A stretch of 64,000 nt of DNA, taken from the NCBI GenBank assembly GCA_965649765.1, contig OZ287754.1:24800001-24864000 (forward strand), in the 5' to 3' direction. The notes below the pieces were generated by a model that was given only the letters and a program-made list of their open reading frames with translations, did no database searches and had not been told where the DNA came from. The translations under genes were made by a program, and so were the position numbers. Origin of the DNA: Bispira polyomma (Eukaryota). Of this stretch, positions 4,793 through 61,694 are shown one piece after another (position 1 is the first letter of the stretch; each line of letters starts with the position of its first letter).

Positions 4793-4874
4793 TATATAAA
4801 ACTGATCAAATTTAATATATTGAAGACTGTTGAACTTAAAAAAGGCTGTATTTTAAAATCGTAAGGGAGTAATA

Positions 4875-6008: not shown

Positions 6009-6032
6009 TAGGTTATTGCATTAAGTATCACA

Positions 6033-7589: not shown

Positions 7590-8055
7590 TATGAGTCAGT
7601 ATATGGGACAGATGCTATCATGTAGTTTTCTTTGTGTTACAAAGGGTTTCAGACTGATATAGAAATTATGTCATTCAGACTATGTTAAAATTGCTGACAA
7701 ATAGTTTTCTTTGTGTGAGGGAGAGTTTTAGTCTGATATCAAAATGACATCATTTAGTGTAAAGTTTATTTGATGACAAAGATTTATAGTGGGGATGTAA
7801 ATGGAGTAAAGAGACAAAAGGTTCTACTATTTACATAATGTAAATGTTAATCTATGACATAATGTAAAAAGGTGGGTGGGGAAGGGTGAGTTCTTATGAA
7901 ACAGATATTGGTGATGTAATTCAGGTAATGAGATAATGATATTATAAATAATAAAAGGTTAGGTAATGAGCTATAATTAGATTTCTAGGAGGGAAAAAGT
8001 GTATATATTGAGGGGTGAGAATGACTGAGGGTATAGATTCAACTGACTGATTAGA

Positions 8056-25049: not shown

Positions 25050-25810
25050 TGCCTGTTGGAATGTCGTGAGGAAACTCTGTGACATAAATCTTAATAATAC
25101 TCAATGGTAAAACAGTTGTGGTCTTCTCAGTGAACTATCAATGAATTTATACTCAGTCTGAATGAAGACATGCAAAAAAGGTGGGGTGCGAATTATTTTT
25201 GGCAAGAATATATGATTAAAACTATTGAAAACTATTGAAAACATGTTATCAATTGTAAAATCTTATAAAGAAAATAAATGCTTTGGGGATACAAACATTA
25301 ATACGTATATGTGGGCCTAATAAAGATTCACCTTCTTTTTACAATAATATTTTCAATGCTGTTGTTTCTCATGTTGAAGTTTATGTTCTCATATGTGGAG
25401 ACTTCAACTTAGCCTTAAATTCTCTCAAAATGAATGTCCAATTATACTATTATTAATAATCTATAATTAAGAAAGGTTGTTTTAAATGTGATGGAGGACT
25501 TGAATTAACTGATGTCGATAGGAATTGGCATTAAGATACCCTCAAAAATTCCTTTAAGAAACAAAGTTGAATACACTATTTCGTGGCATCAAAAATTTAT
25601 CAAAGTTGATTCATCTTGTACCTGGTCATAGAAATGACCATTCTTTAATTAAGTTAGAAATATTTATTGCTAAGTTTGAATATGGAGAACAACTGTGCAA
25701 GTTCAACACACTATTACTGTAAGGACAGGAATATGTAAAATTGATAAATAAAACAAATAACAGACAATGTGTTTAATATGTGATTCATGTGTATAATTTT
25801 GAGTATTTGA
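25050..25810 (+). mobile_element. Highly decayed L1-clade APE endonuclease remnant
   Basis: Fragments GPNKDSPSF (~25315), LICGDFNLAL (~25390) and PGHRNDHS (~25620) match the endonuclease at 40539-41513. Confidence 0.7.
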
Positions 25811-30173: not shown

Positions 30174-30487
30174 TAAGTGACTGTGACTATATGTGGTGAT
30201 GTTACGTTATGTGATTTTTACATTTGTTATTTGAAATCAATCAATCAATCATTCCAGTGAATTGTTTATACAATAAATTGCATCTACACAGAAGTTTATT
30301 TCAGTGTTCTCATTATCTTTCTTAAAATTAGTAGGCCATGACCATAGTAATCCAGAATAATGTTTAGCTAGCAAGTGAACCACAGGAGACCACAAGAAAT
30401 CATTACCTTGATCTTGATTACTATAAGTTTGATCTTGTCTCATCTCCAAATAATAAATGTTTTGGTAAAATTAAGCATGACACTTCA

Positions 30488-32580
30488 AATATTGTACACC
30501 AATATATCTTCATGTGTAGGTAATAATGGCTGTTACTCTCAATATTTTCAGCTAACACGTGGAATTAGACAAGGTTGCCCAATTTCTCCTCTACTTTTTC
30601 TTCTTGTTGCAGAAATAATGGCCATATATATAAGACACAAAGATGCTATCAAGGGACTGGCTGTAAATGGATGTGAATTCAAAATTAAAATGCTAGCTGA
30701 TGATAAAACTCTTTTTTAAAAGAATATGGCATCTGTTGAAGAAGCCGTTCAACAATATAAGAAATTTTCTCAATGTTTGGGGTTAAAACTCAATCTTGAC
30801 AAAACTAAAATAATACCAATTGGTACAAATGTCCATAAAATTATCACCACTCCTAAGTCAATCAATATGGTTAAAATAAAAACACTGCATTTAAAACATT
30901 AGGGATTTGGTTTTCCAAAAGTAAAAAAGAAATGGTTGATTTAAATTTTAACGTTAAGATAGAAAATATGAAAAAGATACTTTTTATTTGGAACTCACGA
31001 AACCTATCACTAAAAGGGAGAATAATAATCCTAAAGTCGCTAATTCTGCCACAAGTTTTATATCTTTTTAATGTTATTTATGTACCAAAAGAGATTTTAG
31101 ACCAAATTAATACCATGTTTTTATCATTTTTGTGGAAAAATAAACCTGCAAAAGTTAAAAAAGATACCATTGTTGCATCAATTGAAGATGGTGGGCTAAA
31201 AATGGTAGACATCTATTCTATGCATACAGCAGCTAAATGTAGCTGGATTAAAAGACTTGCCTATAATGATAATGCTAATTGGAAAATATTGACATACAAA
31301 ATGCTCTCTCTAAATGAAAATTTACTAATAAAAATTTCAGTTTTATCTCTACAAAAAAGTGCTTGGCAATGTTCCATCAACAAGTTTTAGAAAGCTGGTA
31401 TAAAGTCTACTGTACAACTCCTGACAATGAAACCGAGATATTAAATGAATATATTCTTTATAATAAAGAAATTACTATAGCTAAGAGGCCAATATCCAGA
31501 ACTCAATTTCCGAACAAATTTAGCTATAACATTAAAATGATAGATATCTTGGACCAAAATGGATATATTTTACAAAGACATGAATTAAACCGAAGGCTAA
31601 ATTGCAAGCTTAAGCCAAATGTTCTACAACTCTATTGTGAGTTCCATTCCAAAATTGTGGAAGGGAAAACTAAAACTTTATTCCATAGATCGTTGGAGTG
31701 ATGAAATTCATTTGAATCTTTCTAATAAATGGATTCCATTAAAAAAAATTACCTGTAAACAAGTTTATGAAGAACAAATAAGGAAAATAACTAAAACACC
31801 AACTGCAATTGAAAGCTGGATCGAAACTTATCCTTTCTTGGAATCTCATCATTGGACTGAAACTTTTACACTGCCGTATAAATTTTTAATAGAACCTTAC
31901 CATCAAAGTTTTCAATACAAGATAATTAACAGACTTTTAAATTGTAATTACAACTTATATAAGTGGCACATACTGACTTCACCAAATTGTTTGTACTGTG
32001 GGAGTGTAGACACAATTTCTCACCATTTATATGAATGTCAAGAAAGTATAAAATTCTGGAAAAAATTGGAGGATTGGATCTATAGTTACATAAACACAAG
32101 GTTTAACTTTACTGTATGTGAAGTGCTATTTGGAATACCTTATACACATGATCCCATATTAGAAACCATAAATTATATTTTAACTCTTGGAAAATGGTTT
32201 ATCAATAAAAAAAAGAACAAATAAGAATAGTCTAATATTCTTTGAATTTATTTTAGTTTTGAAAGAAAAATTTAAAGTTCTCTGCACAACAAAAATGCTT
32301 AAAGGAATTACACCAGACAAATATTATTATTATGAATTATTATACAAGAGTTAATAAAATGTTGTTTTGTTTCAAAACATGTAATAGAAATGATATATCT
32401 GAGACTGATTAATAAACATATTATCATAGTAATGTTGTATTATGTTTGTCTATTTCTGAGTTCTCTTGTTTTGTAATACTTGTATATTGTAATGTTGTAT
32501 TGTATTGTAATTTAAGTATATATATATGTAAAAAAAAAACAATCAAAAAAAAGAAATGGTAAAAAAAAAAAGAAAAAAAA
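30488..32580 (+). mobile_element. 5'-truncated L1/Tx1-clade LINE inserted in the Harbinger element
   Basis: RGIRQGCPISP, LADD, C-terminal CLYC...HHLYEC zinc knuckle, A-rich tail at 32530-32580, 14-bp TSD agcatgacacttca (30474-30487 / 32581-32594). Confidence 0.92.
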
Positions 32581-36206: not shown

Positions 36207-37319
36207 ATGGGAAGAACGAAGAAAACTCCCGGTAGTGCACCTCAAGCAACTAAGAAACCAGTGACCACCAGGAGGGCTGCTTCTGCAAAGATTAAAGACC
36301 CTGTGGTAAGGAACTTAAGAGACCCGTTAGCCGAGTCAGAGATTTCTATGGGGGGATCTAACGGATTGTCCGGGGTAATGGCCATATTGCAGCGTCTCTA
36401 GTTGGCAAACGCTGACATTAACAAAAGACTAGACCAAGTTGAACTGAAAGGGTCAGTTAATTCAACCCCTTTGACGTCCCCTGTAATACTAGTCAGGAAC
36501 AACACTATGCTAGATTTACGTCCTCACGTAGCGTTGCCATTACCCCCGAATCTGCGTCCAGGTCAGACTGCTCAGCAGCTGGGTCACTCAACTTCGTATA
36601 CTGGCCACCAACATCACGACTACCAATGGGACGGCATCATTCCCAGGCTTGATGTTCTGAAATCCATTCCGGACGTTAACGCCGCTGTGAACCAAAGGCT
36701 TGCTGCATATGACACCCAACTACGACAAGACTTATCCCAAGGTAAGACGTCCTTACGCCAAAAGTCCGGCTGTTACAACACCACAGACGTATATGGTGTG
36801 GAACCTCAGTCACGTTGGGCTAATGAGGGATGGATAGGGGGAACAGCCCGAAAGAGGCCAAGCTTCGATGATCTTACTATGCCCCAATGGGCAGCTGGGC
36901 AACTTGCCAACATCACCCAGGTTTCCGACCCTAATCTGATGAGGCAAATGCTGCACCAGAGGATATACTCGCTCCGGGATGCAGACGCGCTACCATGGAC
37001 GGCAGTGAGGGCAGCATGGGGCGGAAACATGCAGCAGATCGAAGAGGGGCGACTCGACTGGTCGAACTTGAACCGCCTTAGCACTTCTCAGTTGGCACTC
37101 GTCAACCCTCAGACCACGCACCAGGCTCAGAAGGCAAAAGTTTTGTGCAAATACTATAATAATGGTTCTTTCAATAATGAAAATGATCATGGCCAATATA
37201 GGCATATTTGTAATTACTGTTACCGTAACCTAAACAAAGAAAGTGCTCACCCTGAACATAAATGTAACAAAGCGAATGCTACTAAGAAGCCATCTGATGG
37301 CAACCAGTTAACAAAATAG
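36207..37319 (+). pseudogene. gag-like ORF1 of YR retrotransposon 1 (one internal stop at 36399-36401)
   Basis: Same frame across the stop. C-terminal CKYYNNG...HICNYC...HPEHKC zinc-finger region. Homologous to 56578-57942. Confidence 0.88.
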
Positions 37320-37687
37320 GTAGCTAGTCAACGACCAAGTGGATGAACAATTGAACATGTTGTAAATTGCAATAATTTTTTTTATTATATTATTTTTTTT
37401 TTCTCCAGTGCACAAGTACACGTTAATATATAGAAACGTTTAACACCACAACACACTAGTATCAAATGATTGAACAAATTTACATCAAGATATTCATGTT
37501 ACTGACTTCAAGAATTTACATCATATAACGTTTAACACCATAACACGCTAGTATCAATAATTGTATAACTTTACATCTAGATATTGATGTTACTGACTTT
37601 GGGAATTGACAATATTCTGTTATTTAATTTTACATACAATATTTCTTACATTTACCGCTCTAAAAAAAAAAAAAAAAAAAAAAATTT

Positions 37688-40600
37688 CTATATGATCCCT
37701 GTGACAGAAAAAAGAGGACTCCATTTCCCCCATATATTTGAAAAATTCAATGCTTTATCTGTGAGTTTTGCTAAATATTCTTCATCTATATAAATAGATT
37801 CTAATCGTTGCAACAGTGTACTTATATTACGCATATTGTCACTAATGGATGTATCACAAATAAATTTCTTGGTGACAATGATTATTGCATTTAATGGTTT
37901 TTGATTTTGATCAGTGAAAGGATATCCAAATATAATGTCCCAAGTACTAAAAATTACATTAACGTTGATCCTGTCTTTAATAACCCTTGAGAGCTGGGCC
38001 CATACATTTTTTGTACTTTCGCATTCAACAAACATATGCAAAATGGTTTCATCCCGTCCACATTTTCGACACAATGGGTCATCTTTTATCTGAAGTTTAT
38101 ATAAATAGCCTTTTGTTCCTAATATTCTGTAAAGTATTTTCATTTGGAACCATATTAAATTGTTACTCTTAATTGTTCTATGGCAGATGTTGAATATAGT
38201 GGACCATGTTTCATTATCAATAATTAATTTCATGTCTCTGTTCCATTTTAATTTCATTGAATGTTCATTTACATTATTTTTGTTGAATGTTCTGTAGAAA
38301 ACCCTAGCCCCTTGGTTTGCCTTAAATAGTATTTTCATAAAGAAGGGTATTGTCGGTCTTTGCATAATTGCATTTCCTTCTGAGTGTACTTTGCGGAGGA
38401 ATATAGTAACATTTTGTCTAACAGTTAAGTAATTTAATGGATCAATATGATTTATACCGAACTTCTGCTTTAGTCGGCTAAGATCAAGAACTTTTCCAGA
38501 TGTATCTATTACATCGGCCACCATATCAATGCCATTTTTATACCATGTAGACATAAACATAGTCTCTCTTGATATTCTTTCATTAAACCAAAGTGGACTT
38601 GCTAGTAAGTCAAGCCAATATTTCTCGGTTTGGTTTTGACAAATAATGTCCCAGGCATTAAAAACATCCACCCAGAATTTATTTGAGGTTTTTCTTATCA
38701 CATATTTCAGGTAAGTAGGTCCTAAAATAAGAAATTGCGTCAAATCTTCAGTTATGGTATTCTGGAACAGCTGCAGCCACGGTTTATTACAATCTCTTAC
38801 TGTGCGTCGTATCCATGTAGCTTTCGTAGCTTGCATAATATAATCTAAATTACACATCTTAAGTCCACCCAAGTAATAATCAAGCATTAATGTTTTTCTA
38901 TTTATTTTATCAGGTTTATTAGACCATATAAAGTTGAAACATAGGTTTCCTATTTCACTCAATATTGATTTGTCAGGATTTGGAAGACATATAAATATGT
39001 GGTTCAATTTAGAGAGTAAAAGACTCTTAATAACAGTAATTTTTCCTATGGGTGTCAGTGTTCTTCTGCTCCATCTATTTACTAGTTCTTTTACCTCTTT
39101 AAGTTTTTCTATATAATTTAGCTCGATGCACCTGTGTAAGTCTACCGAGAAATTAACTCCCAAAAGGGTAAACTGGCTGGTATCCCATTGAAATTTAATA
39201 TTTATTAATTTTTCTTTGCAATGCTTCTTTTTGCCAATCCATACAATTTGTGTTTTATCTTTGTTTACAATTAATCCAGATATATTGCCAAACACTTCCA
39301 AAGTATTAAGTGCTGCTCTTAATGAATCAGCCGAACCATCCAAGATTAAAGTGGTGTCGTCAGCAAATTGTGTTAGCTTAAATGTCATATTGTTACATTT
39401 AATGCCCTTTATGTCTGGGTTATTTGAAATTAATATAGCTAATATTTGTGCCGCAAGAATAAAAAGATAAGGGGAGATAGGATCTCCCTGTCTACACCCA
39501 CATTGAATGTTTATGAACTCAGAGAGAAAACCACATTGAATCACGCTTGCTTTGATGTCACTGTTAAATAGTCTGATCCAGTCTATAAAGGTTTCATTAA
39601 AATTTAGAAATCTAAGAACATCGTAGATGAAAGGCCATGTAATCGAATCAAAGGCCTTTTCGAAATCAATCATGACTAACATTCCCGGAATATGATGAAC
39701 TTCTGTGTAATGCATAATGTCATAGATGAGACGTGTTGATTCACCGATGTACCGACCTGGGACAAAACCGCATTGTGTGTTATCAATTAAATGATCCAGA
39801 AGAGGCTTAACTCGATTAGCTATTGCTGCAGAGGCCATCTTATACAATACAGTAAGCATAGACAACGGACGCCAATATTTAACAAGCTCACGTGGCTTTC
39901 CTTTCTTTGGTAGGCAAGTAATAACACACTGTCGCAGTGTAAGTGGTAATATTCCTTTTTTAAAGCTGCAATTTAAAGCCTGGGTGATAAAAACTCTTAA
40001 ATCCTTCCAGAATATCTTAAAAAACTCAGAGGGAAATCCATCAATACCGGGTGTTTTATTATTCTTCATTTGTTTTAAGGCCAGACCAATTTCATCTGTA
40101 GAAAGCAGGTCACCAAGATGTGATGTTTGTGCTTCAGTCAATTTCTTTACCTCATAATCCTTTAATAAATTATTCAAATCATAATCCTCCAATTTATCTT
40201 TGCATAGTTGAAAAAGTTTTTTATAATATTGTCTCAGTTCAGCCAAAATTTCATCTTGCTTTGTAATATAGGTATTATCTTTACGTTTTATTCTTTTTAT
40301 TGTTTTTTCAATGTAATTATGACGTTCCAAGGCTAAAAAGTACTTGCTAGGTTTTTCTCCTTCAGCAAGCCATTCAAAACATGACCTTACCTGCTGACCT
40401 TGCATTTTAATATATCTTAAATTTTCAAGTTCAGTTTTTTTAGATTCAATTGTATGAAGCTCATCTACTGGTTTATGTTCTTCTAACCAAGCTATCTCTG
40501 ATAAAAGTGTTCTCTCAAGGTCACAGTTTTTGCGCTTTTTACCAGTTGCATATTTGATGGATTAACCCCCTGATACGTAAAAGTAGTACCTCAATGAACA

Positions 40601-41513
40601 TGTCATAATCAATAGTCATGTTAATATCAGTAAAAGGCTGTTTATTTAGAAAATCAATATTGTAGACTGGAGCTGCATATCTAACATATTCCTCCCTTAT
40701 ACACTGTTTTATTCGACATAAAAATTGGTTTTCTTTCAGAAGACTTGTATTGAGTTTCCATATACCCTTACCTTTGGTGAAATTATTTATTACAAAGCTA
40801 AGTTCCAACATCGAGTGGTCTGATCTATATCCCGGTTTTATGTCTACATTACTAATAAGGTCTGTCATACCAGCTGAAAGCAAAAAATAGTCTAACCTAG
40901 CTTGTTTTGTGGGATTGCGTCGGCGCCATGTATATCTAATTTTGTTTGGGTAGCAATGCCTATAAATATCTAATAAATTATTTTCCTTCAAAATTTGTAG
41001 CACAGTTTGTCTCGAATTTGGATTGTTTACATTAACATAATTATAACTGTCCATATCAGGATTTAAGGTCAAGTTGAAATCACCACACAGTAAAATATAG
41101 TCTTGTTCATTAGTTGCTACTAAGGATCCAACATTTTTATAAAAATCTATATCATCTTTATTTGGACCATATATATTTATAAGCCTTAAGTTAATTCCGT
41201 TAATCTGAAAATCGATCAATATCAAGTTTCCACCTTTGTCTTTGTCTATTTTGCCAATCGTGTATTCAAAATTTGTGCTAAATAGTATTGCTACCCCTCT
41301 TGCATTACCCCTGTTGCCGTTCATAATACATTGGCCATCCCATATTTTTTTCACATCTGGTTCATTTATATCTCTCAAATGAGTATCCTGAAGACATACT
41401 ATATGAGATTTTTTGCCTTTAAAATAGTTCAATACATCAAATAATTTTTCTTTGTTATTTAAACCGCGACAATTTGCTGACAACACAGTTATGTTATTAT
41501 TTACTGCTGACAT
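37688..41513 (-). CDS. LINE ORF2: APE endonuclease, reverse transcriptase and zinc knuckle; single frameshift near 40565
   Basis: SANCRGL, LQDTH, NIYGPN, CGDFN, RLDYF, SDH; KTPGIDG, DFEKAFD, RQGDPISP, QFADD; CRKC...HMFVEC. Confidence 0.95.
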
Positions 41514-42572
41514 TTATTTTGATGCCTAATGATCGCTTGACAAAACAAACTTGTCAAGATGCGCCCATATAAATTCTCTACATAAAAGAGCAACCAGAAT
41601 GTGTACAAAAATCTGTCATCTAGCCTGTACATGTGTTTCAACAGAGCCATTATCTTTAAGATAATAAAAAGTTCAATCATATTGATACTGACACTTAAAT
41701 TACGGTAAAGAAAGTACACTGGAGTAATGCAATTATAACAAAAAAAAATATAAAAAGGAAAAAAAATAAGTACATAAAAAATGCTTGTCATATTTTGACA
41801 ACAAAAGAAAGACAAGCTAACAAATTTGGAAAAAAAAGAAAAGTAAAAAAAAAAAAAAAGTTAGGTTATTACTGGCTGAAGTCCGGTGTGTGGCTACTTA
41901 ATTAACCTGCAAATCAATTTGATTATAAAAGTTAAAAAATTATATAACAAAGGATAAACAAAGTGTTCCATTTGCTTTTAAACACTAGAATACAATGAAA
42001 TAAAAGGCTCCCTAATATTTACTTTTGTCCACCAGCATTTGTGTGGTAAACCATGCAATAGACTAGAGTTAGTGTAAATTCCCCCAATATGGGTGGAAGT
42101 TTTACCCTATACAAGAGTGACCATTTAACCCAATTTAGAACAAAAAGTGGAAATATAACTCTACACACAAGAATGTCCAAATGAAACAAACCTCTATATA
42201 AACACATAGCCAAATTTGTGTGGGGGGGTCATCTCAAGGGGACAAAATCTTCTATTGATAAAACAGAAAATTACATCACACACTTAGGAACAGAATAAAC
42301 ATATCATATATGTTTATCACATAATATTACCAACATATAGATTCAAATATATATACATATACTTATCAATTTAAATTCACCAATTTAAATGATTGTTTAT
42401 GATATTTATAAACAGTTTATAATTATTTCTAGCCTTACCTACTGCAGGTGAATTTTCAAATGAGGGCAACTGTAACTTTAGAACAAATAATTGTTTAGGT
42501 TTTTATAAACTGTTTATGAATATTTCTAGTTTAACTACTGCTGGTAAATTATCAAGTGAAGGTACTTTATCT

Positions 42573-43544
42573 TTAGGACAATGCATGTCTCACACGTTCC
42601 AATGTCTTACCAGCTACATTTTTGCCTGGCCATTTGTCTGGATTGAATATGTCTCTGCTAATCAGTGGTAATCCAACCCCCCAGAATTTGTCAAACATAT
42701 TTGCCTCAACTAGAGTATGCTTGCCTGTGGACAACAAGAAGGACTTTAACTGCTCATTCTGATGAAATTTAGCAAACATTCCTTCATACATATAGTCCGG
42801 AGCCACCTGGAACCATTCTGCCTTTTTGAAACCTCTTACAGATTTGGCCATCTGTTTAATCGTAACAGGGTCTTGGGCTTGAAGGATGCCTTCCGCTGTT
42901 TCCTTATCTTTAAAGTGAGTGGCTTTTTTGTACATCAAGTACTGCTCTGTTGATGTGAATACAATGTCCTCTGCATTAAACTTCGCGGGATGGTGGTTAC
43001 TTAACGGGGAGTTTCTAGTATAAAATGCTTGCACTCCACCATGCCTGGGTGTGAACACATTCTGAGGCAAAAGCAATGGGTTATCAATTGTGTCAATATT
43101 GTCACTAGTGTAAATCTTACCGCCTAGAATGATTCTGTCAACATTGAATCTTGGCTTTAAATCTGGATGTAGCTGAAGTGCTTTGAAGAAAATCGGAAGC
43201 AGCAATTTACGTCTCTCAACAACTTCTCTAGGAAAGTCCTCTTGCACAGTAACACTCATCGTGCGTAGATTCTTTTTTGCTTTCATTATCTTTTCCTTAT
43301 TGTGCCATTGCCAGACCTTTACAATCACTGGTCTAGATCTTCCTTCCATTCTTGGGCCAATAAAATGAGCCTCTGCGATATCCTGCTCTGTAACAGCAAT
43401 TCCCACTTTGGCAAGAATTTCTATAACAACATTGACAAGGTTTTGGGGAGTTGGGCATTGAATACCCAACATCCTAATATTATTTTTTCTTGAGTATGTC
43501 TCTTGCCTTAAATGTTGTTCCTTTAGACTTTTATTTTCTCTTTT
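42573..43544 (-). CDS. LINE ORF1 (end of coiled coil, RRM, CTD) fused to a C-terminal NADAR (YbiA/DUF1768) domain
   Basis: Frame is open to the truncation point (..ETYSRKNNIRMLGI, RPVIVK, VQEDFP..V.ERRK). C-terminal FY...PLSNH, FTSTEQY.M..KA..F.D, AKF.QN..L...LLSTG...LVEA...DKFWGVG, GKN..GK.LE.VR. Confidence 0.92.
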   Translation of the reverse strand, partial: KRENKSLKEQHLRQETYSRKNNIRMLGIQCPTPQNLVNVVIEILAKVGIAVTEQDIAEAHFIGPRMEGRSRPVIVKVWQWHNKEKIMKAKKNLRTMSVTVQEDFPREVVERRKLLLPIFFKALQLHPDLKPRFNVDRIILGGKIYTSDNIDTIDNPLLLPQNVFTPRHGGVQAFYTRNSPLSNHHPAKFNAEDIVFTSTEQYLMYKKATHFKDKETAEGILQAQDPVTIKQMAKSVRGFKKAEWFQVAPDYMYEGMFAKFHQNEQLKSFLLSTGKHTLVEANMFDKFWGVGLPLISRDIFNPDKWPGKNVAGKTLERVRHALS

Positions 43545-46078
43545 TAAATTGCAATAATAGCAGTGGCATAGTTAGTAAATCTAATGTTAGAACTAATAGC
43601 TATTCTGGAAGTAAAGTAGAAAACAAAACTAATGTCAATAACTCTGAGTATCATGTAATTGCTAGTAAAGAAGAAAAAATACAATGTGAAAGTACAGTGA
43701 AATTCTGGGAAAGTACAACTCAGAAAAGTCCAGTTCACGAATATATACACCAGGTTGGGCATTATGAAGTTCATAATGCACTAATATATAGTGATATTTC
43801 TGAAATTGAATGTAACATTTCTACTATAAACTGTATATTTGTGTGTCCACAAGATAATCGTGACCACCAGGTGGTATACTTGCACTTTCCAAAACATAAC
43901 AGCTGGTCAGGTTTCTGCTATGGGATAAAAAGTACCACAAGTGTTAGATATCAGCATTTAGCCAATTTACCAGGCTTTCAGTTAATGGTTACTGACAAAC
44001 AAAAGGTCAATATGTCTGTGCAAACTTGTTATCATGTATATCAGTATAATAATACTGACCGAGAACATGCTGGTCTCACCTTTCGAAACTATCACAGAGA
44101 CCTTACCAGCTACCAGAAAGATAATCACGATTATGTGCAATACATGTATAATATTACTGACATGCTTATTGAAAAGGATAATGTGATAATTTATGTTAAT
44201 AAAGATGAAAAGGTTGGAAAGTCCAAGGTGAGTAGCAAACGAGCGCACACTCCGCCTGTGGATCATGTCGACGGGTTGTTCAGCCCCGACACGGGACACA
44301 GTTCTTCTTCCAAACTAAGTGACATTAAGGACATTACAGACTCTTCCAAAAGTCTAGGCTTAATTAAACTTTCTAGAAAAACCTTCAATTTTGCTGGACC
44401 TGACAGGGATTCGGTTCAGATAGATAGTATAAGTAAAATGACTGATATAGCAAACATTATTAGAAGTACAGGGGTGTCCAACTATAAGCAGGTACGCATT
44501 CCAATTAAATCTCAGTTGAACATTAAGGCCTGGGAGGATATCACCCAGAACCACCCTGACAAAATAATTACACAATATTTAAAGTTTGGCTTTCCACTGT
44601 CATTCAGTGACTCCAAACAACTTAACTCACAAGATGTTACTAACCACCACTCTGCTTTGCAATTTCCTAAGGCTATTGACGAATATCTGAATAAAGAAAA
44701 GAGTAAGGGCGCCATGTTGGGTCCTGTGGCCAACATCCCAGATTCTCAATTCTACTGCTCACCCTTACTTACTAGGCCCAAAAATGGCAGTAAGAGACGA
44801 GTCATTCTTAACCTCTCTTATCCGGTAGGTAATTCAGTTAATGACAACGTTAGTCGGGGAATTTATGATGACACGGAATTCTCACTCAAATTCCCTAGTA
44901 TTGACAATATAACTGCAAGTATTCGGGACACTGATAACCCACTTATGTTTAAGGTGGACATGGCCCGCGCGTTCAGAAATTTAAGAGTCGATCCGGTGGA
45001 CGCCTTAAAGCTGGGTATCAAACATAACGACCAGTATTACGTTGACGCTGCCGTGGTGTTTGGCTGTGCCTACGGCAGTGCTATCTTTCAGCGATGTTCG
45101 GATATCATAGCAGATCAGATGAAAACATTGGGTTATAACCTTCATTGCTACATCGACGACTATGCTTGCATATGTCCGGAATCTCAGGCAAAACAATGTT
45201 TTGACCACCTCTGCAAATTACTGAATTACGTAGGTCTTTCAATGAATCCTGATAAGGTTTGTGCTCCCTCTACTAAGGTCACATTTGTGGGTATTGACAT
45301 TGACATTACTAAGGGAACAATCAGTATAACTAAAGAAAAAATTGCTGAAATATTTCGAACATGTGTCGATACACGGAAAATATCCTGGATATCTCGTACA
45401 AATTTTCAGTGTGTGCTAGGAAAATTGCTTTACATACACAAATGTGTAAAACCTGCCCGTTACTTTATTAATCGTGTCCTTTCAGTTTTTAGGGCTTCCC
45501 CTGGAGCCAAGCGCTTCAAAATTACTAAAAACCTTAAAAGTGATTTAGACTGGTTCATTAATTTTCTTTTTAATTACAACGGGGTCACATATATAAATCC
45601 TCTCCCAATTAAGGCAAACAAAGAAATGTATTTACCTGCATGCCTCACAGGTTTGGGGGGCATTTGGAATGACCAAGTTTACCACACACCTATCTATAAT
45701 GTTTACCAATATGACCTCCATATTACACAATTAGAAATGGTCAATATTGTAGTGGCTTTGAAAGTTTGGGGAGAAAATTGGGCTCACCAAAGGGTGACAG
45801 TCCATTGTGACAACATGGCCGTGGTCTTGGTCGTCCAGACTGGCAAAACTAGAGATCCATACTTAGCTGCTTGTATTCGCAACATTTGGTTGCTTACTTC
45901 AACACACGACATTACTTTAGAAATAGTACACATTAAGGGTAAAAAGAACATATTGGCGGATGCTTTGTCCAGAATCTATTCGGACAATCCTCCTAAACAA
46001 AGTATGATGCAGTTACTTAATCAGTATTAACGAAAACCAGTTCCAATTAGTCATTTTAATTTAAACCTTAACATATAA
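43545..46078 (+). pseudogene. RT-RNase H of YR retrotransposon 1 with a long N-terminal extension
   Basis: FKVDMARAFR, YIDD; RNase H LEMVN, HCDN, ADALSR. First RNase H Asp appears replaced (YLPAC versus HLDAC in element 2). Premature TAA at 46028-46030. Confidence 0.9.
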
Positions 46079-49949: not shown

Positions 49950-52670
49950 CTGCGTTAATGCTAATGTCTCTTGCTCTTTCAGTTGACCTTTTTAATATTC
50001 TCACGGGAAAGGGCAGTATTGGGTCTAATTGTTAAAAGTTTCTGTTATTGTTGTTCTGAGTAAAAAAATGCTTACCACCCCCTTGTACAACAGTCAAAAA
50101 CAAAACATGATGGGATATTACACATTTTGTTTATTTTATTGAATAGAAGTACTTCTCCCTCATTATCTACTATGTCAGCTATAAAGAGTATTCTAGCCTG
50201 ATGCCATTTGAGCATGCAAAGATCATTTTTACTTATATTGTTCTGATACCATAAAAGAGATAAACAAAATTCTTCAGTTGTTTTAGGTTTAACATTATTG
50301 ACATCCATTATCCAAGCATTAAGAACAGATTTCCAAAAATCATTACTAGTCCTAGATATCAATTTTGATACCATAGAGAGCCTTTGCTTGTCAAGTGTTT
50401 AGTGTTGGTAATGACTCTTTGAAATAGTTGTGTCCGGGGTGGTTGGTAAGCTTGGAGTAATCTTCTTATCCATGTAGTTTTGATGGCATGAATAAACTTT
50501 TCAAGACTGAGCATATTTAGCCCACCCTTAGCATATATCTTTTATTTTATCAGGCTTGTTCTCCCAAATATATGAGTTAAACGATTTTTTGGGTTTTGGT
50601 GATGTAGCTTAGCAGAAGTGTGGGAAGACTTCTAAATAGATGATTAAGTTTTGTTGGTATAACCAGTGTTTTTAAGACAGTGGTTTTACCAATAGGAGTG
50701 ATATGCCTGTTTGACCAGGAGCTCAAAAGCTTGTTAATTTCAACTAATACATGATCAAAAATTATCTCTACTATTTTATTGAGATTGATAATAAATTTCA
50801 ATCCCAAGAATAAATTTGGTGTCTTTCCAGTCTAACTTTCATTTATTTTTAATTTCTCATTTAAATTTTTTTCCTACCTGTCCACATTAAATTTTATTTT
50901 TCTCGAGTTTATAATAAGACCAGATAAGACCAGTGCCCTTTTTACCATTAAATCTTGTGACTTAGATCCCATCCCAGCAGTTATACTGAGTCAATGTCTT
51001 GACATTCTTGTCACACCCATAACAAATATATTAAATTTTTCTCTTCGGGATGGTGTTTTTCCCACCTGTTTCAAGACGGCAAACGTAACTCCCTTGATTA
51101 AAAAACAAGGGCTTGATAAAAACCAGCTCAAAAACTACAGACCGGTGTCAAACCTCAGCTTCGTCTCAAAAGTCATCGAGAAAGCTGTAGCTAAACAAAT
51201 TTCTGACCACCTAAATAGACAAAACATTCAGTCTGCTTATAGAAAATTTCACTCTACAGAAAGTGCCCTTTTTTCAATTAGCAATGATATCAATCTTGCA
51301 CTGGACCGCAACGACACAGTGGCCCTCACCCTTCTAGATCTCTCAGCTGCTTTCGACACTATTGATCATGTCCTGCTCTGCGACACTCTCAAGCAGTGGT
51401 TCGGTATAAATGGCAGTGTCCTTAAATGGATCAGATCCTACCTTACTCTTAGAGCACAAAGAATTAAACTAGATGATTACCTATCATCTTCCATAGAACT
51501 TCCATATGGAGTACCCCAGGGATCCGTCCTTGGTCCTCTACTTTTCACCCTTTATACACATCCTCTCAGCACTGTCATCAATAAACACAATATAAAGCAC
51601 CACATGTATGCAGACGACACTCAAGTCTATCTCTCCATCAAACCACAAAATGCATATACTAACATAGACCTACTTGCAGACTGTCTGTCTGATGTCCAGG
51701 CGTGGATGAACTACTCCAAACTAAAGCTTAACCCGGACAAAACAGAATTCATCCTCATAGGAAACAAGAAAAACAGTGAACTCCTAAAATCTTTGTTTCC
51801 CATCTCCCTGCTGGGAAAAGACATACTACCTTCCGAAAATGCTAAAAACCTGGGTGTCACTTTTGATTCAGCTTTTTCGTTTGATACGCATGTTGCCAAC
51901 ATCTGTCGCTCCTGCTATTACCACATACGTGACATCAAAAGAATCAGAAACCACTTGTCCATGGACACAGCGATAACTGTGGCAAATGCCCTTGTGAGTA
52001 GCCGCCTCGACTACTGCAATTCTCTCTTGTACGAAGCAAACAAGTCAAACATTAAAAAGCTCCAGTCCATCCAAAACTACCTATGTAGGGTCATTTTTCG
52101 CCTGGGTTGTCGCACAGATGTCACTCCTTACCTCAAAAAATTACACTGGTTGCCCATTGAATCTCGAATTTTGTTTAAGATTCACGTTACCACTTTTAAG
52201 GCTGTAGTCACTCAACAGCCACCCTACCTTGCCTCCCTTCTTTCCTTCAGTAACCGTAAGAGAGGAAACAGACTCTCTGTCACTTCGGTCAGACCAATCA
52301 GAAAGGCGGGTTTCAGAGCATTCTCCACTGCAGCTCCACGGTTATGGAACAGTCTCCCAGTCGACCTCAGATCAGTTGATACGCTTATCGGTTTTAGGAA
52401 AAAGCTTAAAACCTATCTTTTTAATCTTGCCTACCCACCTTAGCTTTCCTCGTGCACGCTCCCACTTCCTTCCTTACGACTTTGCAATTTCCACGGACTT
52501 AATGATTGGACTAATGATTCTGCTGTTGTGCTTTAGAAGATGCCTAGCATCAATAAAGCGCGTTAAAAATCCATAATAATAATAATTGTATTATATGTTT
52601 CCAAAATGTTTAGTGCAGTTTCAAGGGATGCTAAAGAACCGTCCAGAAATAAATTGCATATTGACTGATT
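49950..52670 (-). mobile_element. Decayed L1-clade LINE fragment split by the L2 insertion
   Basis: FLDGSLASLETALNILETY (52590-52650) continues as SGLIIN (~50910), ITPIGKTTVLKTL and NDFWKSVLNAW; homologous to the 37688 ORF2. Confidence 0.85.
50930..52586 (+). mobile_element. 5'-truncated L2/CR1-clade LINE with an intact RT segment (ORF 51094-52443)
   Basis: [47 protein letters not shown]; AATAAA followed by an (AAT)n tail. Confidence 0.93.
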
Positions 52671-56577: not shown

Positions 56578-57942
56578 ATGGGGAAGACGGCGAAGAAGCC
56601 TCCTGTTACGCGGTCTACTACTACGAAGGTGAGGGGGAAGAAAACTAAGGGTGTTCCGACAGACGACGGTTCACAGGTAACTGATATCATAGCCTCAGAA
56701 GTACATGCCCAGCTCACCGCTCTAGCCTCTAGAGCTTCGGATCTTTCTTCAGATGCACTATCATCGATCATAACTACGTCCGGAGCTACTTATGTTCAGG
56801 CCACACCTCCACGTGCGCCTTTGAGTACAAGCGTTGTACCAGAAGTCGGGCTCTCTCTACCATTTAATTTCCAAACGCTTGGTAAAGATTCGGCTTATGG
56901 CGGGATCACACCACCACGTTGCCAGACTTTACACACAGATCAACAACTCCCTTCGGGTAGCGGGTCGACTTCAGACAACTCTTCACAAATGCTAGCCATT
57001 TTAAAGCGACTTGAGACTTCAAACGCCGAACTCGGCAAACGTATCGAACGGGTCGAGACTGCTCAGACTCAACAAACACTTCTCAATAGGCAGGTAGCAG
57101 ACGTCGCCGCAACTCAGCTCTTCACGGCGAATCCCAGTACTTCAGCAGTGGCTTCGGCAGGAGCGAACCCTGGCTTGGTTCACCAACTTCCGGTTCAACA
57201 CGAATTCGGCCGTGATGGAGTGGTTCCACAACTAGATACACTGAGGGCGATTCCAGCCATCCAAGCAGCTATAGCCAGACAGTTGGCTGGGTATGATGCG
57301 AATATACAGCGGGACATTTTGCAAGGTAAGCCAGTAAAACAAAAATCTGGTCGTTACAACAGTGCTGATATTTCAACAGCAGACCCCAAGTTTAGATGGC
57401 CGAATGAGGGGTGGGTCGGAGCGAATGCAAAACGTAAACCTACATTTGATGAACTTTCTTTGGCCCAATGGGCAGCAGGGCAAGTAAACAACGCTCTCTT
57501 AGTGACAGACTCGGTCGTGATGAAAGGTATGCTTCAACAGATAGTACATACACTCAGGGACGCGGCCGCTCTCCCCTGGCCGGTCGTCCGCACGGCATAC
57601 GGACACAGTATGCAAGAGGTAGAGGAAGGACGTCTCACGTGGGACAATCAAACGCAGTGGGCGCTAAATAGACTTAGCGCATCACAGACGGCATTAGTAA
57701 GCAGCAATACTAACAATGTCACTGGGGATTCGAGCAAGGGGAAACAAAGTAATGAATTCAAGACGATCTGTAAATTGTATAATAATGGGAAGTGTTCTTA
57801 TAAAGCTGACCATGCAAATTACCGTCACATTTGTTGGCATTGTTCAAAGACATTAGGCAAGGATGCTGTGCATCCAGAGTTTAAATGCTTCAAATTTCAA
57901 TCCAATTTGAACAAGAATCCAGAACTTAGTACGAATCGCTAG
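56578..57942 (+). CDS. gag-like ORF1 of element 2
   Basis: 454 aa; basic N-terminus, coiled coil, C-terminal CKLYNNGKC...H...HICWHC...HPEFKC. Confidence 0.9.
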   Translation: MGKTAKKPPVTRSTTTKVRGKKTKGVPTDDGSQVTDIIASEVHAQLTALASRASDLSSDALSSIITTSGATYVQATPPRAPLSTSVVPEVGLSLPFNFQTLGKDSAYGGITPPRCQTLHTDQQLPSGSGSTSDNSSQMLAILKRLETSNAELGKRIERVETAQTQQTLLNRQVADVAATQLFTANPSTSAVASAGANPGLVHQLPVQHEFGRDGVVPQLDTLRAIPAIQAAIARQLAGYDANIQRDILQGKPVKQKSGRYNSADISTADPKFRWPNEGWVGANAKRKPTFDELSLAQWAAGQVNNALLVTDSVVMKGMLQQIVHTLRDAAALPWPVVRTAYGHSMQEVEEGRLTWDNQTQWALNRLSASQTALVSSNTNNVTGDSSKGKQSNEFKTICKLYNNGKCSYKADHANYRHICWHCSKTLGKDAVHPEFKCFKFQSNLNKNPELSTNR

Positions 57943-60711
57943 GGACAATACCGTCAGCCAATCAGCGGAAATAGCAAGTTTAAAGGTAAGCAGAGTAATG
58001 ATATTAACCAATTTATTAACATTGAGAATAATGTTCCAAAACTCAATAAATGTAGGTATACAAAATTAAATTCTAACAATGCCAATAACGGTGATGTTCA
58101 AGGTATAAACAACTCTGAATGTTTACATTATGAGAACATTGGGAAAAATAAAAATGTCAGCATTCAGGCAACCGAGGAGTTTGAATGGGGGCATTATGAT
58201 AATTATGATATAGAATATAAAGATGTCATAGACACTGTTGAGAAGAATGGTGTAATAGATATAATTCAATGTGATCAGAATATTACAGACAATCTGAATA
58301 TGGGAAAACCAAATGGCATGAATTGTAATGATAAAAAGGTGATTATAAATGAACTTTGGCAGAATGTTGTTAGCCAACTTGACATGGTTAGTAAAGTAAA
58401 AATTTCAGTCACGAATTGGTATGCAATTTCTACATACGGGGGTGTTATGGCACCTGTAGTGCATATGTCTAGTGTAAGTAACGGCTTTTATTGTATATGT
58501 CATTCTGATACTGATAATTGTATGATCTATTCACCTACTGCCATAACCTTTACAGATAAATTGCAGATCATAGATTGTTATGAGACTGAGATTTGGTTGA
58601 ATCACAGTATAAGCAATGATGTAACACCATATAGTATGGTCATGCATTCTCACACTGATAAGCAACAGTCGGTCAATGACCATTACAATTATACTAAAGA
58701 TCTGCAATGCTGGGAGCGTTATGGCTATGATTATACTTCATACATTGAAAATATTATTGACACATTAATGTTGCAATCTGAGGTGTCAGATTATAGTTCA
58801 GATTTAGTAAATGATGATTCAATAAACTTAACTGATAGTACTACCAGGCAACAGCAGGTGAGTAATAACGACGTACCAGAAAAAGACGCATCCCTCTTCT
58901 TCGAAAATTGTGACAGTACATATATACATGAACTTAAAGAAGTTACCAGTTCTGGTGACATTGACATTAATGATCCAGATAAGAAAAAAGGCTTTCTTGC
59001 ACTTTCTAATACAAAATTTGAGTTCAATGGCCCTGATAGACAACCAGTGAACATTGATTCCATTGATGAGATGATTAGAATAGGCAAGGTAATTAGTGAC
59101 ACTCAACTTCCTAATTACAAACAAGCTAGATTTCCTATTGGTTCGGGGTTGAACCCAACTGCTTGGGAAGACATATTTCATGATTACCCTGATCAATTGA
59201 TAATACAATACATTAAGTTTGGCTTTCCTCTAAGTCTTACAAATCATAATAAGTTAAAGAACACAGAAATACACAATCATTTCTCTGCTTTACAATATAC
59301 CAAAGAAGTTGGTCAATACCTGGAGAAAGAAAAGAGTAAGGGAGCTATGTTGGGCCCAGTCAAAGCAATAAATTCCTCTCAACTTCATTGTTCTCCATTG
59401 TTAACTCGTCCCAAAGATATTGATAAAAGACGAATAATCTTGAATCTCTCATATCCTGATGGAAATTCGTTGAATGACAATGTTGATAAAATACACTTTG
59501 ACGGTGTAAAATTTAAATTAAAATTTCCTACTATTGATGACATCACACAGGCAATTATTAATACTGAAGAACCAACTCTATTCAAAATTGATATTTCGCG
59601 CGCGTTTCGTAACCTCAGAGTCGACCCAGCTGAGGCCATTAAGTTGGGCATACTCTGGAATGACAACTTGTACCTTGATCCGGCAATTCCCTTCGGCTGG
59701 GTACATGGAAGCGGGGCATTTCAGCGTTGTTCAGACACAGTCGCTTACTTTATGAGAAAATCCGGTTTTAACTTATTATGCTACATCGATGATTATATAT
59801 GTATAGTACCTAAATCCAAGGCTCAGCAGGGTTTTGAAATTCTTATAGATCTCTTGACAAAACTAGGTCTACCCATGAATAGTGAAAAACTCACTACTCC
59901 CACCTGTAACATTACATGTCTAGGTATAGACATAGACGTGCAGGAAGGTACTATTTCTATAACTAAGGAAAAAATTACTCAAATTTGGAACCTTTGTTTA
60001 GAAATATATAACAAAAAATTCATTTCCAAAAATAAATTTCAATCCCTTTTAGGCAGTTTACTTTACATACATAAATGTGTCAAACCAGCGCGTACTTTTA
60101 TAAATAGACTGTTAATGGCGTTTAGAGGTAATACAGACAAACGTATAAAGATCGATACTGCTATGAAAAACGATTTACAATGGTTTCTAACATTTCTCCC
60201 AGTTTATAATGGCATCACATATATTCAGCCTACCATCATTCAACACGCGAACGAACTGCATCTTGACGCTTGCCTTACTGGCTGCGGAGGAATCTGGGGT
60301 GAACAGATATACGCAACCCCTATTCATAACCTTTACAACAGAGATCTCAACATAGCACATTTAGAAATGTTGAATATCATTATTGCAGTAAGAATATGGG
60401 CTAATGACTGGGCCCACAGCAAACTTAATATTCATTGTGACAATATGGCTGTAGTATTGGTTGTCGGATCACAGAAAACCAGAGACGACTTTTTGGCACT
60501 CTGCTTAAGAAATTTATGGCTGATAGCAGCAACATTCGACATAACACTCACCATCGAACACATCCCTGGTAAGCAAAACGTTATAGCTGACGCTCTTTCA
60601 AGGATTTACTCAGCTCATCCACCTCCTTTGGAAATGTTAAATACACTCAATAACAAATTCCAGTGGAAACAAGTCACACTGGAACACTTTAATCTCAATT
60701 TATTTGTTTAA
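57943..60711 (+). CDS. RT-RNase H of element 2, in frame with gag after a single TAG (first ATG at 58300)
   Basis: No stop codon from 57943 to 58299. FKIDISRAFR, PFG, YIDD; RNase H HLDAC, LEMLN, HCDN, ADALSR. Confidence 0.92.
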   Translation, partial: GQYRQPISGNSKFKGKQSNDINQFINIENNVPKLNKCRYTKLNSNNANNGDVQGINNSECLHYENIGKNKNVSIQATEEFEWGHYDNYDIEYKDVIDTVEKNGVIDIIQCDQNITDNLNMGKPNGMNCNDKKVIINELWQNVVSQLDMVSKVKISVTNWYAISTYGGVMAPVVHMSSVSNGFYCICHSDTDNCMIYSPTAITFTDKLQIIDCYETEIWLNHSISNDVTPYSMVMHSHTDKQQSVNDHYNYTKDLQCWERYGYDYTSYIENIIDTLMLQSEVSDYSSDLVNDDSINLTDSTTRQQQVSNNDVPEKDASLFFENCDSTYIHELKEVTSSGDIDINDPDKKKGFLALSNTKFEFNGPDRQPVNIDSIDEMIRIGKVISDTQLPNYKQARFPIGSGLNPTAWEDIFHDYPDQLIIQYIKFGFPLSLTNHNKLKNTEIHNHFSALQYTKEVGQYLEKEKSKGAMLGPVKAINSSQLHCSPLLTRPKDIDKRRIILNLSYPDGNSLNDNVDKIHFDGVKFKLKFPTIDDITQAIINTEEPTLFKIDISRAFRNLRVDPAEAIKLGILWNDNLYLDPAIPFGWVHGSGAFQRCSDTVAYFMRKSGFNLLCYIDDYICIVPKSKAQQGFEILIDLLTKLGLPMNSEKLTTPTCNITCLGIDIDVQEGTISITKEKITQIWNLCLEIYNKKFISKNKFQSLLGSLLYIHKCVKPARTFINRLLMAFRGNTDKRIKIDTAMKNDLQWFLTFLPVYNGITYIQPTIIQHANELHLDACLTGCGGIWGEQIYATPIHNLYNRDLNIAHLEMLNIIIAVRIWANDWAHSKLNIHCDNMAVVLVVGSQKTRDDFLALCLRNLWLIAATFDITLTIEHIPGKQNVIADALSRIYSAHPPPLEMLNTLNNKFQWKQVTLEHFNLNLFV

Positions 60712-60717
60712 TTGTAG

Positions 60718-61694
60718 GTTCTACCAACATCAGCAGCAGCTTTATACCCTCTGCTTGGGCCAGGATTGATACAGCCATCAGGCCAAAGACTGCTAGCACA
60801 TATAAAGCACAATTTAATACTTTCCTGTCCTTTAATCACTTTGTGGGCATTTCCGAGGTAACAGTTCATTCAGTGTTAGTATTTCTAGAATATCTGGTTC
60901 AGGCAGGGTTATCACCTGGTGCAATAAACAACTATGTAGCAGCTATTAAATACATGACACAAAAATTCCAACTAGATACCACTCCTTTATCTCATAAGTA
61001 CATACAGCTTTTCTTGAGAAGTTTGACTCATAATTCAACTTTCAAGCCTAAACATAAAGGCATTTTCAGCATACAACAGTTAGCCAGCATATCTAAAGCA
61101 TGTGACATTTTACACGATCCACCACTATTTAGGGCCATTTTTCTGCTGGCATTTTTTGCCTTCTTAAGGCTTTCTAATATAGCATCACATTCTAGGGCTT
61201 CATTTGATCCTACAAGACAATTCCTCAGACAGGATCTATTGTTTATTCCACCTGGAGCCCATATTACATTAAAATGGGCAAAAAATCTACAGAATAGATC
61301 TGATACACACAACATACAGATTCCTCAATTGCAGAACTTGGTGTCATGTCCAGTCCTGGCTTTGAGGAAACTACTAGCTTCCAGGGATTTACCTCCTCAT
61401 GCACCTTTATTTGCATCAGCTACTCCACCTTTTTACCCAATAGTGGATTCTCACGTGAGGGCAGCCCTTCAAAAAATATTACAACACATTGGGATAGAAT
61501 ACAAATTTCATGGATTTCACACATTCAGGCGATCAGGCGCCACATACGCATTCAATAATAATGTTTCACTACAGAATATTATGTCACACGGCTTATGGAG
61601 ATCCTCAGCAGTGTGGACTTATCTACAACAAACTTCAGAAGCAGCTTCTGTAGTTCCCCTCACGTTCGCTTCCACCATTCCTTCTTTCTCTTAG
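60718..61694 (+). CDS. Tyrosine recombinase of element 2 (no initiating ATG; probable spliced exon)
   Basis: FAFLRLSN, KWAKN, HTFRRSGAT, HGLWRS, VWTY: complete catalytic set. Frame opens after ttgtag at 60717. Confidence 0.92.

Follow-up and report, generated by a model that had tools for sequence, protein, structure and literature searches.

Why should a retrotransposon carry, on the protein that would coat its own RNA, a domain from a family whose assayed members strip ADP-ribose from nucleic-acid bases? The question is raised by a 64,000-nucleotide stretch of the genome of Bispira polyomma (assembly GCA_965649765.1, contig OZ287754.1, positions 24,800,001 to 24,864,000 of the forward strand), which we call the window and whose positions are counted from its first letter. 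On the minus strand, positions 37377-43544 are occupied by a 5′-truncated long interspersed nuclear element (LINE) of L1/Tx1 type, flanked on both sides by an exact 14-bp target-site duplication (TSD), and the first of its two open reading frames (ORFs) ends in a NADAR domain of the YbiA family. An earlier reading of the sequence alone, hereafter the original prediction, had singled out this fusion, suggested that it might erase ADP-ribose for the benefit of the element, and raised the possibility that it was new. Taken as a whole that prediction is supported in part: the fusion, the L1-type ORF1, the NADAR assignment, the conservation of the domain and the selection acting on it are all borne out below, and the erasing of ADP-ribose is a putative role. 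What has to be given up is the claim to a first description: the fusion is already present in Repbase sequences and in print (PMC12477816), a circumstance which the prediction itself had said would cost it its novelty.

An L1-type ORF1 protein with a C-terminal NADAR domain

The ORF1 remnant is an ORF of 299 amino acids at 42573-43472 (minus strand, as are all parts of the LINE), and its frame is open upstream as far as 43544, the 5′ end of the element. As had been predicted, ORF1 continues into the NADAR domain without a stop from 43544 to 42576, and all of the motifs by which the fusion had been recognised are found in it, namely SRKNNIRMLG, RPVIVK, EDFP..ERRK, SPLSNH, STEQY..KKA, AKFHQN, LVEA..DKFWG and GKN..GKTLERVR. 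The domain had been placed at about 43030-42576. The profile search recommended by the prediction returned Pfam NADAR (PF08719) with 145.2 bits against a gathering cut-off of 35.1 (E 2.7e-42), the match covering positions 9-162 of the 163 of the profile and amino acids 153-298 of the 299-residue ORF (window 42579-43016); our own bounds for the domain are 42576-43037, followed by the stop codon at 42573-42575. A family profile made of 25 homologous ORF1-NADAR proteins aligned with the structures of the Phytophthora nicotianae NADAR (8BAU, E 6.8e-35) and of Escherichia coli YbiA (2B3W, E 1.1e-22), and the single sequence of the window alone reached 8BAU at E 2e-14. For the N-terminal half of ORF1, Pfam alone gave no match at E < 0.01; the family profile matched human L1 ORF1 protein (ORF1p) in the structures 2YKO (E 2.2e-11), 2LDY (E 2e-7) and 2W7A (E 1e-4).

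Structure prediction, which had likewise been called for, led to the same picture. The AlphaFold2 model, built on a 25-homologue alignment, has a mean pLDDT of 94.7 and a pTM of 0.84, with no segment below 70, and the fold of YbiA, a helical core with two small flanking sheets, is present in the predicted structure. When the model was compared with the PDB by Foldseek, the top matches were 8BAU (E 6e-11, target-normalised TM-score 0.76), 2B3W (E 4.6e-8, 0.75) and, over about 190 aligned columns, the trimers of human ORF1p (E about 3e-6, 0.46-0.53), and the next ones were generic RNA recognition motifs (RRMs). The profile match to 2YKO and the Foldseek match to the ORF1p trimers thus bear out the assignment of an L1-type ORF1.

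These comparisons delimit the parts of the protein from its truncated start to its stop codon. Of the N-terminal coiled coil, the final 19 residues or so are left at 43488-43544, where the element is truncated; they align with the coiled-coil end of the full-length relatives, in which 70-150 upstream residues match coiled-coil structures, and they form a helix at residues 2-19 of the AlphaFold2 model. Next comes the RRM (43233-43487), to which the RRMs of 2YKO and 2W7A are aligned by the family profile and 2W7A and generic RRMs by Foldseek, and which is modelled in the order beta-alpha-beta-beta-alpha-beta. The C-terminal domain (CTD) of the chaperone, at 43098-43232, lies in the roughly 190 columns that Foldseek aligns with the human ORF1p trimer, matches the RRM-CTD structure 2LDY as well, and contains the conserved EDFP..RR..L.PI. 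It is joined to the NADAR domain by a linker (43038-43097) of proline-rich consensus LP..L.P...TP, whose mean pairwise identity, 30.6%, is about that of the RRM. The ORF1p of this lineage is, in short, an L1-type RNA-binding chaperone (coiled coil, RRM and CTD) extended by a short proline-rich linker and a C-terminal YbiA-family NADAR domain, and the identity and architecture of the fusion can be regarded as practically certain.

[quoted passage not shown]

By structural and mutational work, the catalytic residues of the P. nicotianae NADAR are E43, K50 and E125, the first two corresponding to E88 and K95 of the enzyme of E. coli C7, and its contacts with ADP-ribose are made by K75, W89, D130 and W133 (PMC11543638). 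The identity of the residue in the last strand separates the families: a glutamate defines the YbiA family, an aspartate the BC4488 or DarT1-linked NADARs, and a histidine the phage NADARs (PMC11125620). Residues were mapped by pairwise HMMER alignment to 8BAU, the chain numbering of which runs two ahead of that used in PMC11543638. In this alignment E43, K50, K75, W89, E125, D130 and W133 correspond to E176, K183, K206, W220, E256, D261 and W264 of the 299-residue ORF, so that all seven are present, and E256, which belongs to the LVEA motif, stands opposite E125 of 8BAU. Among the 25 fusion proteins the columns of E43, E125 and W89 are invariant (25/25 each), the column of K50 holds lysine in 24/25 and arginine in the remaining one, and K75, D130 and W133 are each kept in 23/25. 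With the catalytic E176, K183 and E256 in place, the domain, which had been described as intact-looking, looks like a catalytically competent member of the YbiA family. An antitoxin of the DarT1-associated (BC4488) type was considered and ruled out, the last-strand position being Glu instead of Asp, and the other ORFs of the element coding for an endonuclease and a reverse transcriptase, with no ADP-ribosyltransferase domain among them.

Breadth, origin and constraint of the fusion

The fusion is by no means a property of this one copy. A first protein search returned 33 homologues with 29-72% identity, most of them about 400 amino acids long and covering the full query, and PF08719 was found in all but two (P0017 and P0018, which are truncated copies). 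The closest protein, P0001, is 72-73% identical, and the same ORF1-NADAR junction occurs in 24 other proteins at 29-73% identity. A HMMER search with the NADAR domain alone collected 11,909 proteins at E < 1e-3; in the best 150 clusters of these (50% identity), a local hmmsearch placed the ORF1 core immediately upstream of NADAR in 80, which gives at least 80 clusters with the fusion. Of the 219 NADAR domains in a FastTree phylogeny, 117 are fused to ORF1, and all of these except P0100, 116 in number, fell on one side of a single branch (SH-like support 86). Twelve unfused sequences share the fused side; they are short proteins, several of which are known truncated members of fused clusters. 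The distribution fits one in which NADAR was captured once and then kept, with its active site intact, while the family radiated widely.

We considered whether P0017 and P0018, in which the ORF1 core seemed to lack NADAR, might testify to domain swapping, and rejected this, both being truncated or frameshifted copies in which the NADAR motif SPLSNF still begins. Region-restricted and profile searches for NADAR-less relatives of the ORF1 core, which were word-limited, returned few proteins and only far weaker matches (E 1e-26 or worse), one of which is a distant relative annotated from the scallop Ylistrum balloti. As regards the other side of the tree, the nearest unfused NADAR relatives lie on gene-dense, prokaryote- or virus-like contigs; since the tree is unrooted and its sample biased, we claim no donor. 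Among the closest NADAR relatives outside LINEs (P0053, P0054, P0086 and P0091) are giant proteins in which 5-7 NADAR domains stand in tandem. In P0086 two NADAR domains are fused to an ARH-type ADP-ribosylhydrolase, and in P0091, a protein of 3063 amino acids, two NADAR domains are combined with a C5 DNA methylase.

Within the fusion proteins, NADAR is the best conserved part, with a mean pairwise identity of 0.44 over 25 proteins, compared with 0.37 in the CTD and 0.30 in the RRM. All of our element comparisons are between natural copies. Between the window copy and its closest relative, locus L001 (74% nucleotide identity), the nonsynonymous divergence dN is 0.148 in NADAR and 0.181 upstream, and the synonymous divergence dS is 1.75 upstream and saturated in NADAR, from which it follows that dN/dS is about 0.1 or lower. 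It was suggested in the original prediction that one should test whether NADAR is fixed and under purifying selection, and the recurrence of the fusion in at least 80 clusters, the highest identity of any part of the protein and the low dN/dS all answer in the affirmative. The prediction had also named outcomes that would speak against it, and those that concern the sequence were tested: the profile match is strong, the domain is shared by many copies and does not evolve neutrally. On this comparative evidence, NADAR is best described as a fixed feature of a large LINE family, maintained by purifying selection.

Anatomy and class of the element

The limits of the LINE are given by its TSD. The window holds exactly two occurrences of the 14-mer TAAATTGCAATAAT (plus strand), one at 37363-37376 and the other at 43545-43558, against a chance expectation of 0.01; read with the element, the copy at 43545-43558 is the 5′ one and the identical copy at 37363-37376 the 3′ one. 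The limits 37377-43544, as originally proposed, are therefore correct. Between them the element consists of the partial ORF1, a spacer, ORF2, a 3′ untranslated region (3′UTR) and an A-rich tail, so that the domain order is ORF1-NADAR, apurinic-type (APE) endonuclease, reverse transcriptase (RT) and zf-RVT. The spacer (41514-42572, 1.06 kb) has stops in all three frames and no long ORF. The first part of ORF2 (40539-41513) codes for the APE-type endonuclease (Pfam Exo_endo_phos E 1.2e-13; human L1 ORF2p endonuclease E 1e-29), and the second (37688-40405) for the RT and the C-terminal zf-RVT domain (RVT_1 E 7e-33; zf-RVT E 5e-5; human L1 ORF2p E 5e-61). The two pieces are mutually out of frame, through a single frame change near 40567. 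The 3′UTR and A-rich tail (37377-37687) contain a 91-bp tandem duplication at 37435-37611 (1.9 copies, 84% match) and, directly past the ORF2 stop, a 23-nt homopolymer at 37662-37684. Being truncated inside the coiled coil of ORF1, which in full-length relatives has about 400 amino acids and is thus incomplete here, and frameshifted in ORF2, the window LINE is a dead copy, of which the surviving part of ORF1 is intact.

Its relatives include apparently better preserved elements. The order ORF1-NADAR followed by an APE/RT ORF2 recurs in seven other loci (L001, L002, L003, L005, L006, L010 and L011) from at least two assemblies, with a spacer of roughly 0.9-1.9 kb between the two ORFs. One young family, in assembly ERZ22147071, is represented by three 7.16-kb copies that are 98-99% identical and carry TSDs (L006 6707-13866, L002 7707-14860 and L005 6707-13854). 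Both ORFs of L006 are intact, with 398 amino acids for ORF1 and 1274 for ORF2; judging from these features, this family of NADAR-bearing LINEs looks recently active and L006 may be an active element. Unusually long spacers, free of ORFs and not alignable from one family to another, are seen in the window copy, in L001 (2199-4067, 1.87 kb) and in L006 (8198-9764, 1.57 kb). No conserved element was detected in them when the spacers of the window copy and L001 were compared: these do not align, although the ORF1 and ORF2 of the same two elements align at 74-75% nucleotide identity.

As for the class of the element, the RT of ORF2 matches human L1 ORF2p at E 5e-61 versus 6e-21 for R2. Its APE and RT being closest to human L1 ORF2p, and a TSD and an A-rich tail being present, the window LINE is assigned to the L1 superfamily. 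Sequence-specific target sites are typical of many Tx1 elements. In the four insertions for which we compared targets (the window copy, L002, L005 and L006), we found four unrelated, T/A-rich targets with TSDs in place of Tx1-style specificity; since the target sites are mutually unrelated, these families are not site-specific. The Tx1 label of the window LINE is one by analogy, taken from what PMC12477816 states of similar oyster elements.

A putative ADP-ribose eraser on the LINE ribonucleoprotein

ORF1p of the L1 type binds the RNA of its own element in cis and does so as a trimer; a hydrolase fused to it would therefore be concentrated on the RNA template, on the cDNA under synthesis and on the single-stranded target. 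It is tempting to propose that each ORF1p trimer, in coating the RNA of its element, brings three NADAR active sites to the ribonucleoprotein (RNP) and to the site of integration. Acting there as an N-glycosidase, the domain would strip ADP-ribose from guanine or cytosine of the LINE RNA, of the nascent cDNA or of exposed single-stranded target DNA, on which such bulky base adducts would stall reverse transcription. The fusion would then be a transposon-borne counter-measure, or a means of repair, against base ADP-ribosylation by host or microbial transferases, in analogy to the orphan NADARs of T4-like phages that face DarT1.

The proposal owes its plausibility to the fact that every NADAR assayed to date takes ADP-ribose off bases. 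Whether DarT1-linked, YbiA-type, from phages or from an oomycete, these enzymes act on guanine-ADP-ribose in single-stranded DNA (PMC11543638, PMC11125620), NADARs act on RNA too (PMC11833690), and NADAR/YbiA-type enzymes, a sponge protein included, reverse the ADP-ribosylation of cytidine on both DNA and RNA (PMC12945103). Orphan NADARs of T4-like phages neutralise DarTG1 (PMC11825919), and guanine-N2 DNA ADP-ribosylating activity, CARP-1 included, is reported from six species of clam (PMC11209040). Further context is given by the relatives of the LINE NADAR that are fused to an ARH-type enzyme (P0086) or a C5 DNA methylase (P0091), and by the recurrence of the fold in phages, giant viruses and nidovirus replicases. 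The catalytic residues of the LINE domain being invariant or nearly so, catalysis would seem to be what is conserved, and not mere binding. We consider it probable that the ORF1 NADAR would hydrolyse base-linked ADP-ribose in vitro; a counter-defence or repair role in retrotransposition is possible and somewhat doubtful, and the explanation as a whole we put forward tentatively, as a plausible one that falls slightly short of being probable. A bolder form of it would hold that base ADP-ribosylation, by CARP-1- or pierisin-like host enzymes or by toxins of associated microbes, truly restricts the retroelements of marine invertebrates, and that this large LINE lineage survives by means of the eraser on its own ORF1p. 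It is paralleled by the NADARs that occur in RNA viruses of invertebrates, in giant viruses and in phages, and by the NADAR-like tail of a Polinton-like polymerase in the window (see below); we think it unlikely.

Several points weigh against an eraser directed at a defence. The defence that would be countered is itself hypothetical. Enzymes of the YbiA family also cleave small-molecule N-glycosides, such as riboflavin intermediates, and the physiological substrates are stated to be unknown (PMC11543638), while the sole published comment on these elements proposes RNA processing (PMC12477816). In the active site, D86 and R93 of the Phytophthora enzyme, which contact the adenine or a phosphate, are not conserved in the window NADAR. 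The tree on which a single capture rests is unrooted, its sample is biased towards the query and the support of its key branch is 86; furthermore, dN/dS within the two young families is based on 0-8 differences per comparison, too few to use.

Other explanations have to be set beside this one. That the fusion is an accident or artefact, whether a chance motif, an assembly chimera or a LINE that landed beside a host NADAR gene, is vanishingly improbable: nothing speaks for it except that the window copy is truncated and dead, and it is refuted by the Pfam match (E 2.7e-42), the continuous frame, the recurrence of the junction in 24 other proteins and at least 80 clusters, and the same gene order in seven other loci. 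A more substantial alternative is that NADAR acts on the LINE transcript, where it would, for instance, remove a NAD- or ADP-ribose-derived group from ends or intermediates, or aid maturation, with no defence being countered. To our knowledge, RNA-end chemistry has been shown for no NADAR. Those tested were inactive on ADP-ribosylation linked to the 5′ or 3′ phosphate of RNA (PMC11833690). The idea nevertheless draws on the RNA-binding nature of the chaperone to which NADAR is fused, on the NADAR folds that Foldseek finds against BFVD in the replicase polyproteins of nidoviruses from invertebrates (yellow head virus, gill-associated virus and Wenling nido-like virus), on the triple-NADAR protein SNA-3 of Caenorhabditis elegans, implicated in trans-splicing (PMC11125620), and on what has been suggested in print both for the elements in question and for the Gypsy NADAR of Ectocarpus (PMC12477816). 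As the base de-ADP-ribosylation demonstrated for NADARs is an RNA activity as well, RNA processing overlaps with the erasure proposed above; taken on its own, we find it rather unlikely.

It may also be envisaged that NADAR senses ADP-ribose or NAD, or modulates PARP signalling at the integration nick, by binding or trimming the ADP-ribose carried by proteins or DNA ends and thereby recruiting the RNP to DNA breaks or protecting it there. PARP activity at the nick is reportedly involved in L1 integration, and the NADAR fold does bind ADP-ribose, 8BAU being a complex with it. We hold this to be improbable, given that the catalytic Glu/Lys/Glu are invariant in 25/25 or 24/25 diverse proteins, which favours catalysis over binding alone, and that no action of a NADAR on ADP-ribose linked to protein or to phosphate is known. 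In a last alternative, the domain would be a small-molecule N-glycosidase that detoxifies reactive nucleotide-like metabolites, after the manner of E. coli YbiA with riboflavin intermediates, or makes abasic sites from damaged bases, with an indirect benefit to the element. Membership of the YbiA family, with its glutamate in the last strand, is compatible with this, and such an activity is held by YbiA and plant homologues (cited in PMC11543638 and PMC11125620). There is however no evident reason why a housekeeping enzyme should remain fixed for so long, after an apparent single capture and across at least 80 clusters, on a nucleic-acid chaperone that acts in cis, and YbiA-type enzymes cleave base-linked ADP-ribose too; this alternative appears very unlikely.

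Should the ADP-ribose eraser prove true, no enzymatic module of counter-defence would have been described before it on the ORF1 protein of a LINE, and a restriction of animal retrotransposons by ADP-ribosylated bases in RNA or DNA would be indicated for the first time. It would also give a physiological context to the NADARs of eukaryotes, for which the literature on the family states no role to be known. Should it prove false, there would still be good support for a LINE having captured an enzyme domain and retained it over the long term. In either case a confident structural model, the catalytic residues and an apparently intact young family (L006) are now at hand.

Other mobile elements in the window

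The window is almost wholly made up of transposable elements. The LINE itself has inserted into a DIRS-like retroelement, of which flanking ORFs remain on the plus strand, upstream of the insertion at 36402-37319 (gag-like) and downstream of it at 43490-46030 (RVT_1 and RVT_3, RT/RNase-H-like); a second, similar DIRS-like element at 58300-61694 (plus strand, region 56578-61694) has an RT, RVT_3 and a tyrosine recombinase (Phage_integrase). Further LINE fragments with APE, RT or zf-RVT sequences, 30-48% similar to ORF2 of the window LINE, lie at 25271-25809 (+), 30483-32224 (+), 50114-50927 (-) and 51094-52443 (+), and none of these four has an adjacent NADAR.

Another class of mobile element in this window does carry a NADAR. 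Positions 1-7600 (plus strand) hold a decayed Polinton/Maverick-like element with pieces of a family-B DNA polymerase (a DTDS motif and a weak PHROG DNA-polymerase match), an ATPase at 3379-4011, an rve integrase at 5176-5868 and two further ORFs. The polymerase piece at 2285-3382 (+) ends in a NADAR-like domain, which Pfam recognises at E 5.3e-12 and hhalign aligns with the LINE family at a probability of 97.4. As this domain has lost 17 residues to a deletion and both of its catalytic glutamates to replacement (E to I and E to S), it is probably inactive or decayed. This polymerase-NADAR combination had no relative in IMG/VR, and the PolB piece had no match in the PDB or Pfam. A Foldseek search against BFVD found NADAR folds in many giant viruses and phages as well. 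Adjoining the Polinton-like element is an ORF at 8056-8742 (+), possibly a gene or exon of the host, in which Pfam recognises two BIR (inhibitor of apoptosis) domains at E 1.5e-36. Rfam detected no RNA genes in the 64 kb.

Comparison with known systems

A full-text literature search found one paper that joins NADAR and a LINE ORF1, a study of Ectocarpus transposable elements (PMC12477816, Genome Biol 2025). It reports that ORF1 proteins of Repbase Tx1 LINEs from Crassostrea gigas contain a YbiA-family NADAR, and tentatively assigns them a role in RNA processing. By that description the oyster elements have the same architecture as the window LINE, being L1/Tx1-type with a YbiA-type NADAR in ORF1p, in a genome of the same TE-rich (transposable-element-rich) invertebrate style. 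They are treated there in one sentence and a supplementary alignment, without an analysis of breadth, selection, active site or structure. As far as the searchable literature goes, nothing is in print on how broad the family is, on its apparently single origin, on the intactness of the active site or on how strong the constraint is, nor on the structural model and the anti-ADP-ribosylation hypothesis for LINEs. The Gypsy elements of Ectocarpus described in the same paper resemble our case in that a retrotransposon-borne YbiA-family NADAR is kept across families of one lineage. They differ in belonging to the long terminal repeat class, in their brown-alga host and in the position of NADAR, which is at the N-terminus of Pol instead of on an RNA chaperone. 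Because the authors infer that the Gypsy NADAR came from bacteria by horizontal transfer (PMC12477816), it most probably represents a capture independent of that of the LINEs.

Among cellular and viral NADARs, the P. nicotianae enzyme (8BAU) and E. coli YbiA (2B3W) share with the LINE domain the fold (TM-scores 0.76 and 0.75), the catalytic Glu/Lys/Glu, the D..W motif and the last-strand glutamate. They are nonetheless stand-alone proteins, whereas the LINE domain forms the C-terminal end of a nucleic-acid chaperone that is trimeric; identity to them is only 23-26%, and D86 and R93 of the P. nicotianae enzyme are not kept. The orphan NADARs of T4-like phages offer a parallel in logic: a mobile element with a NADAR, no partner transferase and the same proposed purpose, to undo the ADP-ribosylation of bases by a defence (PMC11825919). 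At the position where the LINE NADAR has glutamate, phage NADARs have histidine and DarT1-linked ones aspartate (PMC11543638). Both of these groups are bacterial systems that face a known toxin, whereas the transferase countered by the window LINE would be hypothetical.

On the side of the chaperone, human LINE-1 ORF1p (2YKO, 2YKP, 2YKQ and 2LDY) has the same coiled coil, RRM and CTD and likewise stands upstream of an APE-RT ORF2; it differs in ending after the CTD, with no enzymatic domain, and is about 20% identical to the ORF1 of the window. A precedent for an enzyme domain on ORF1 does exist in the esterase-type ORF1 of CR1/L2-like LINEs, the fold and chemistry of which are unrelated to those of NADAR and which belong to different clades.

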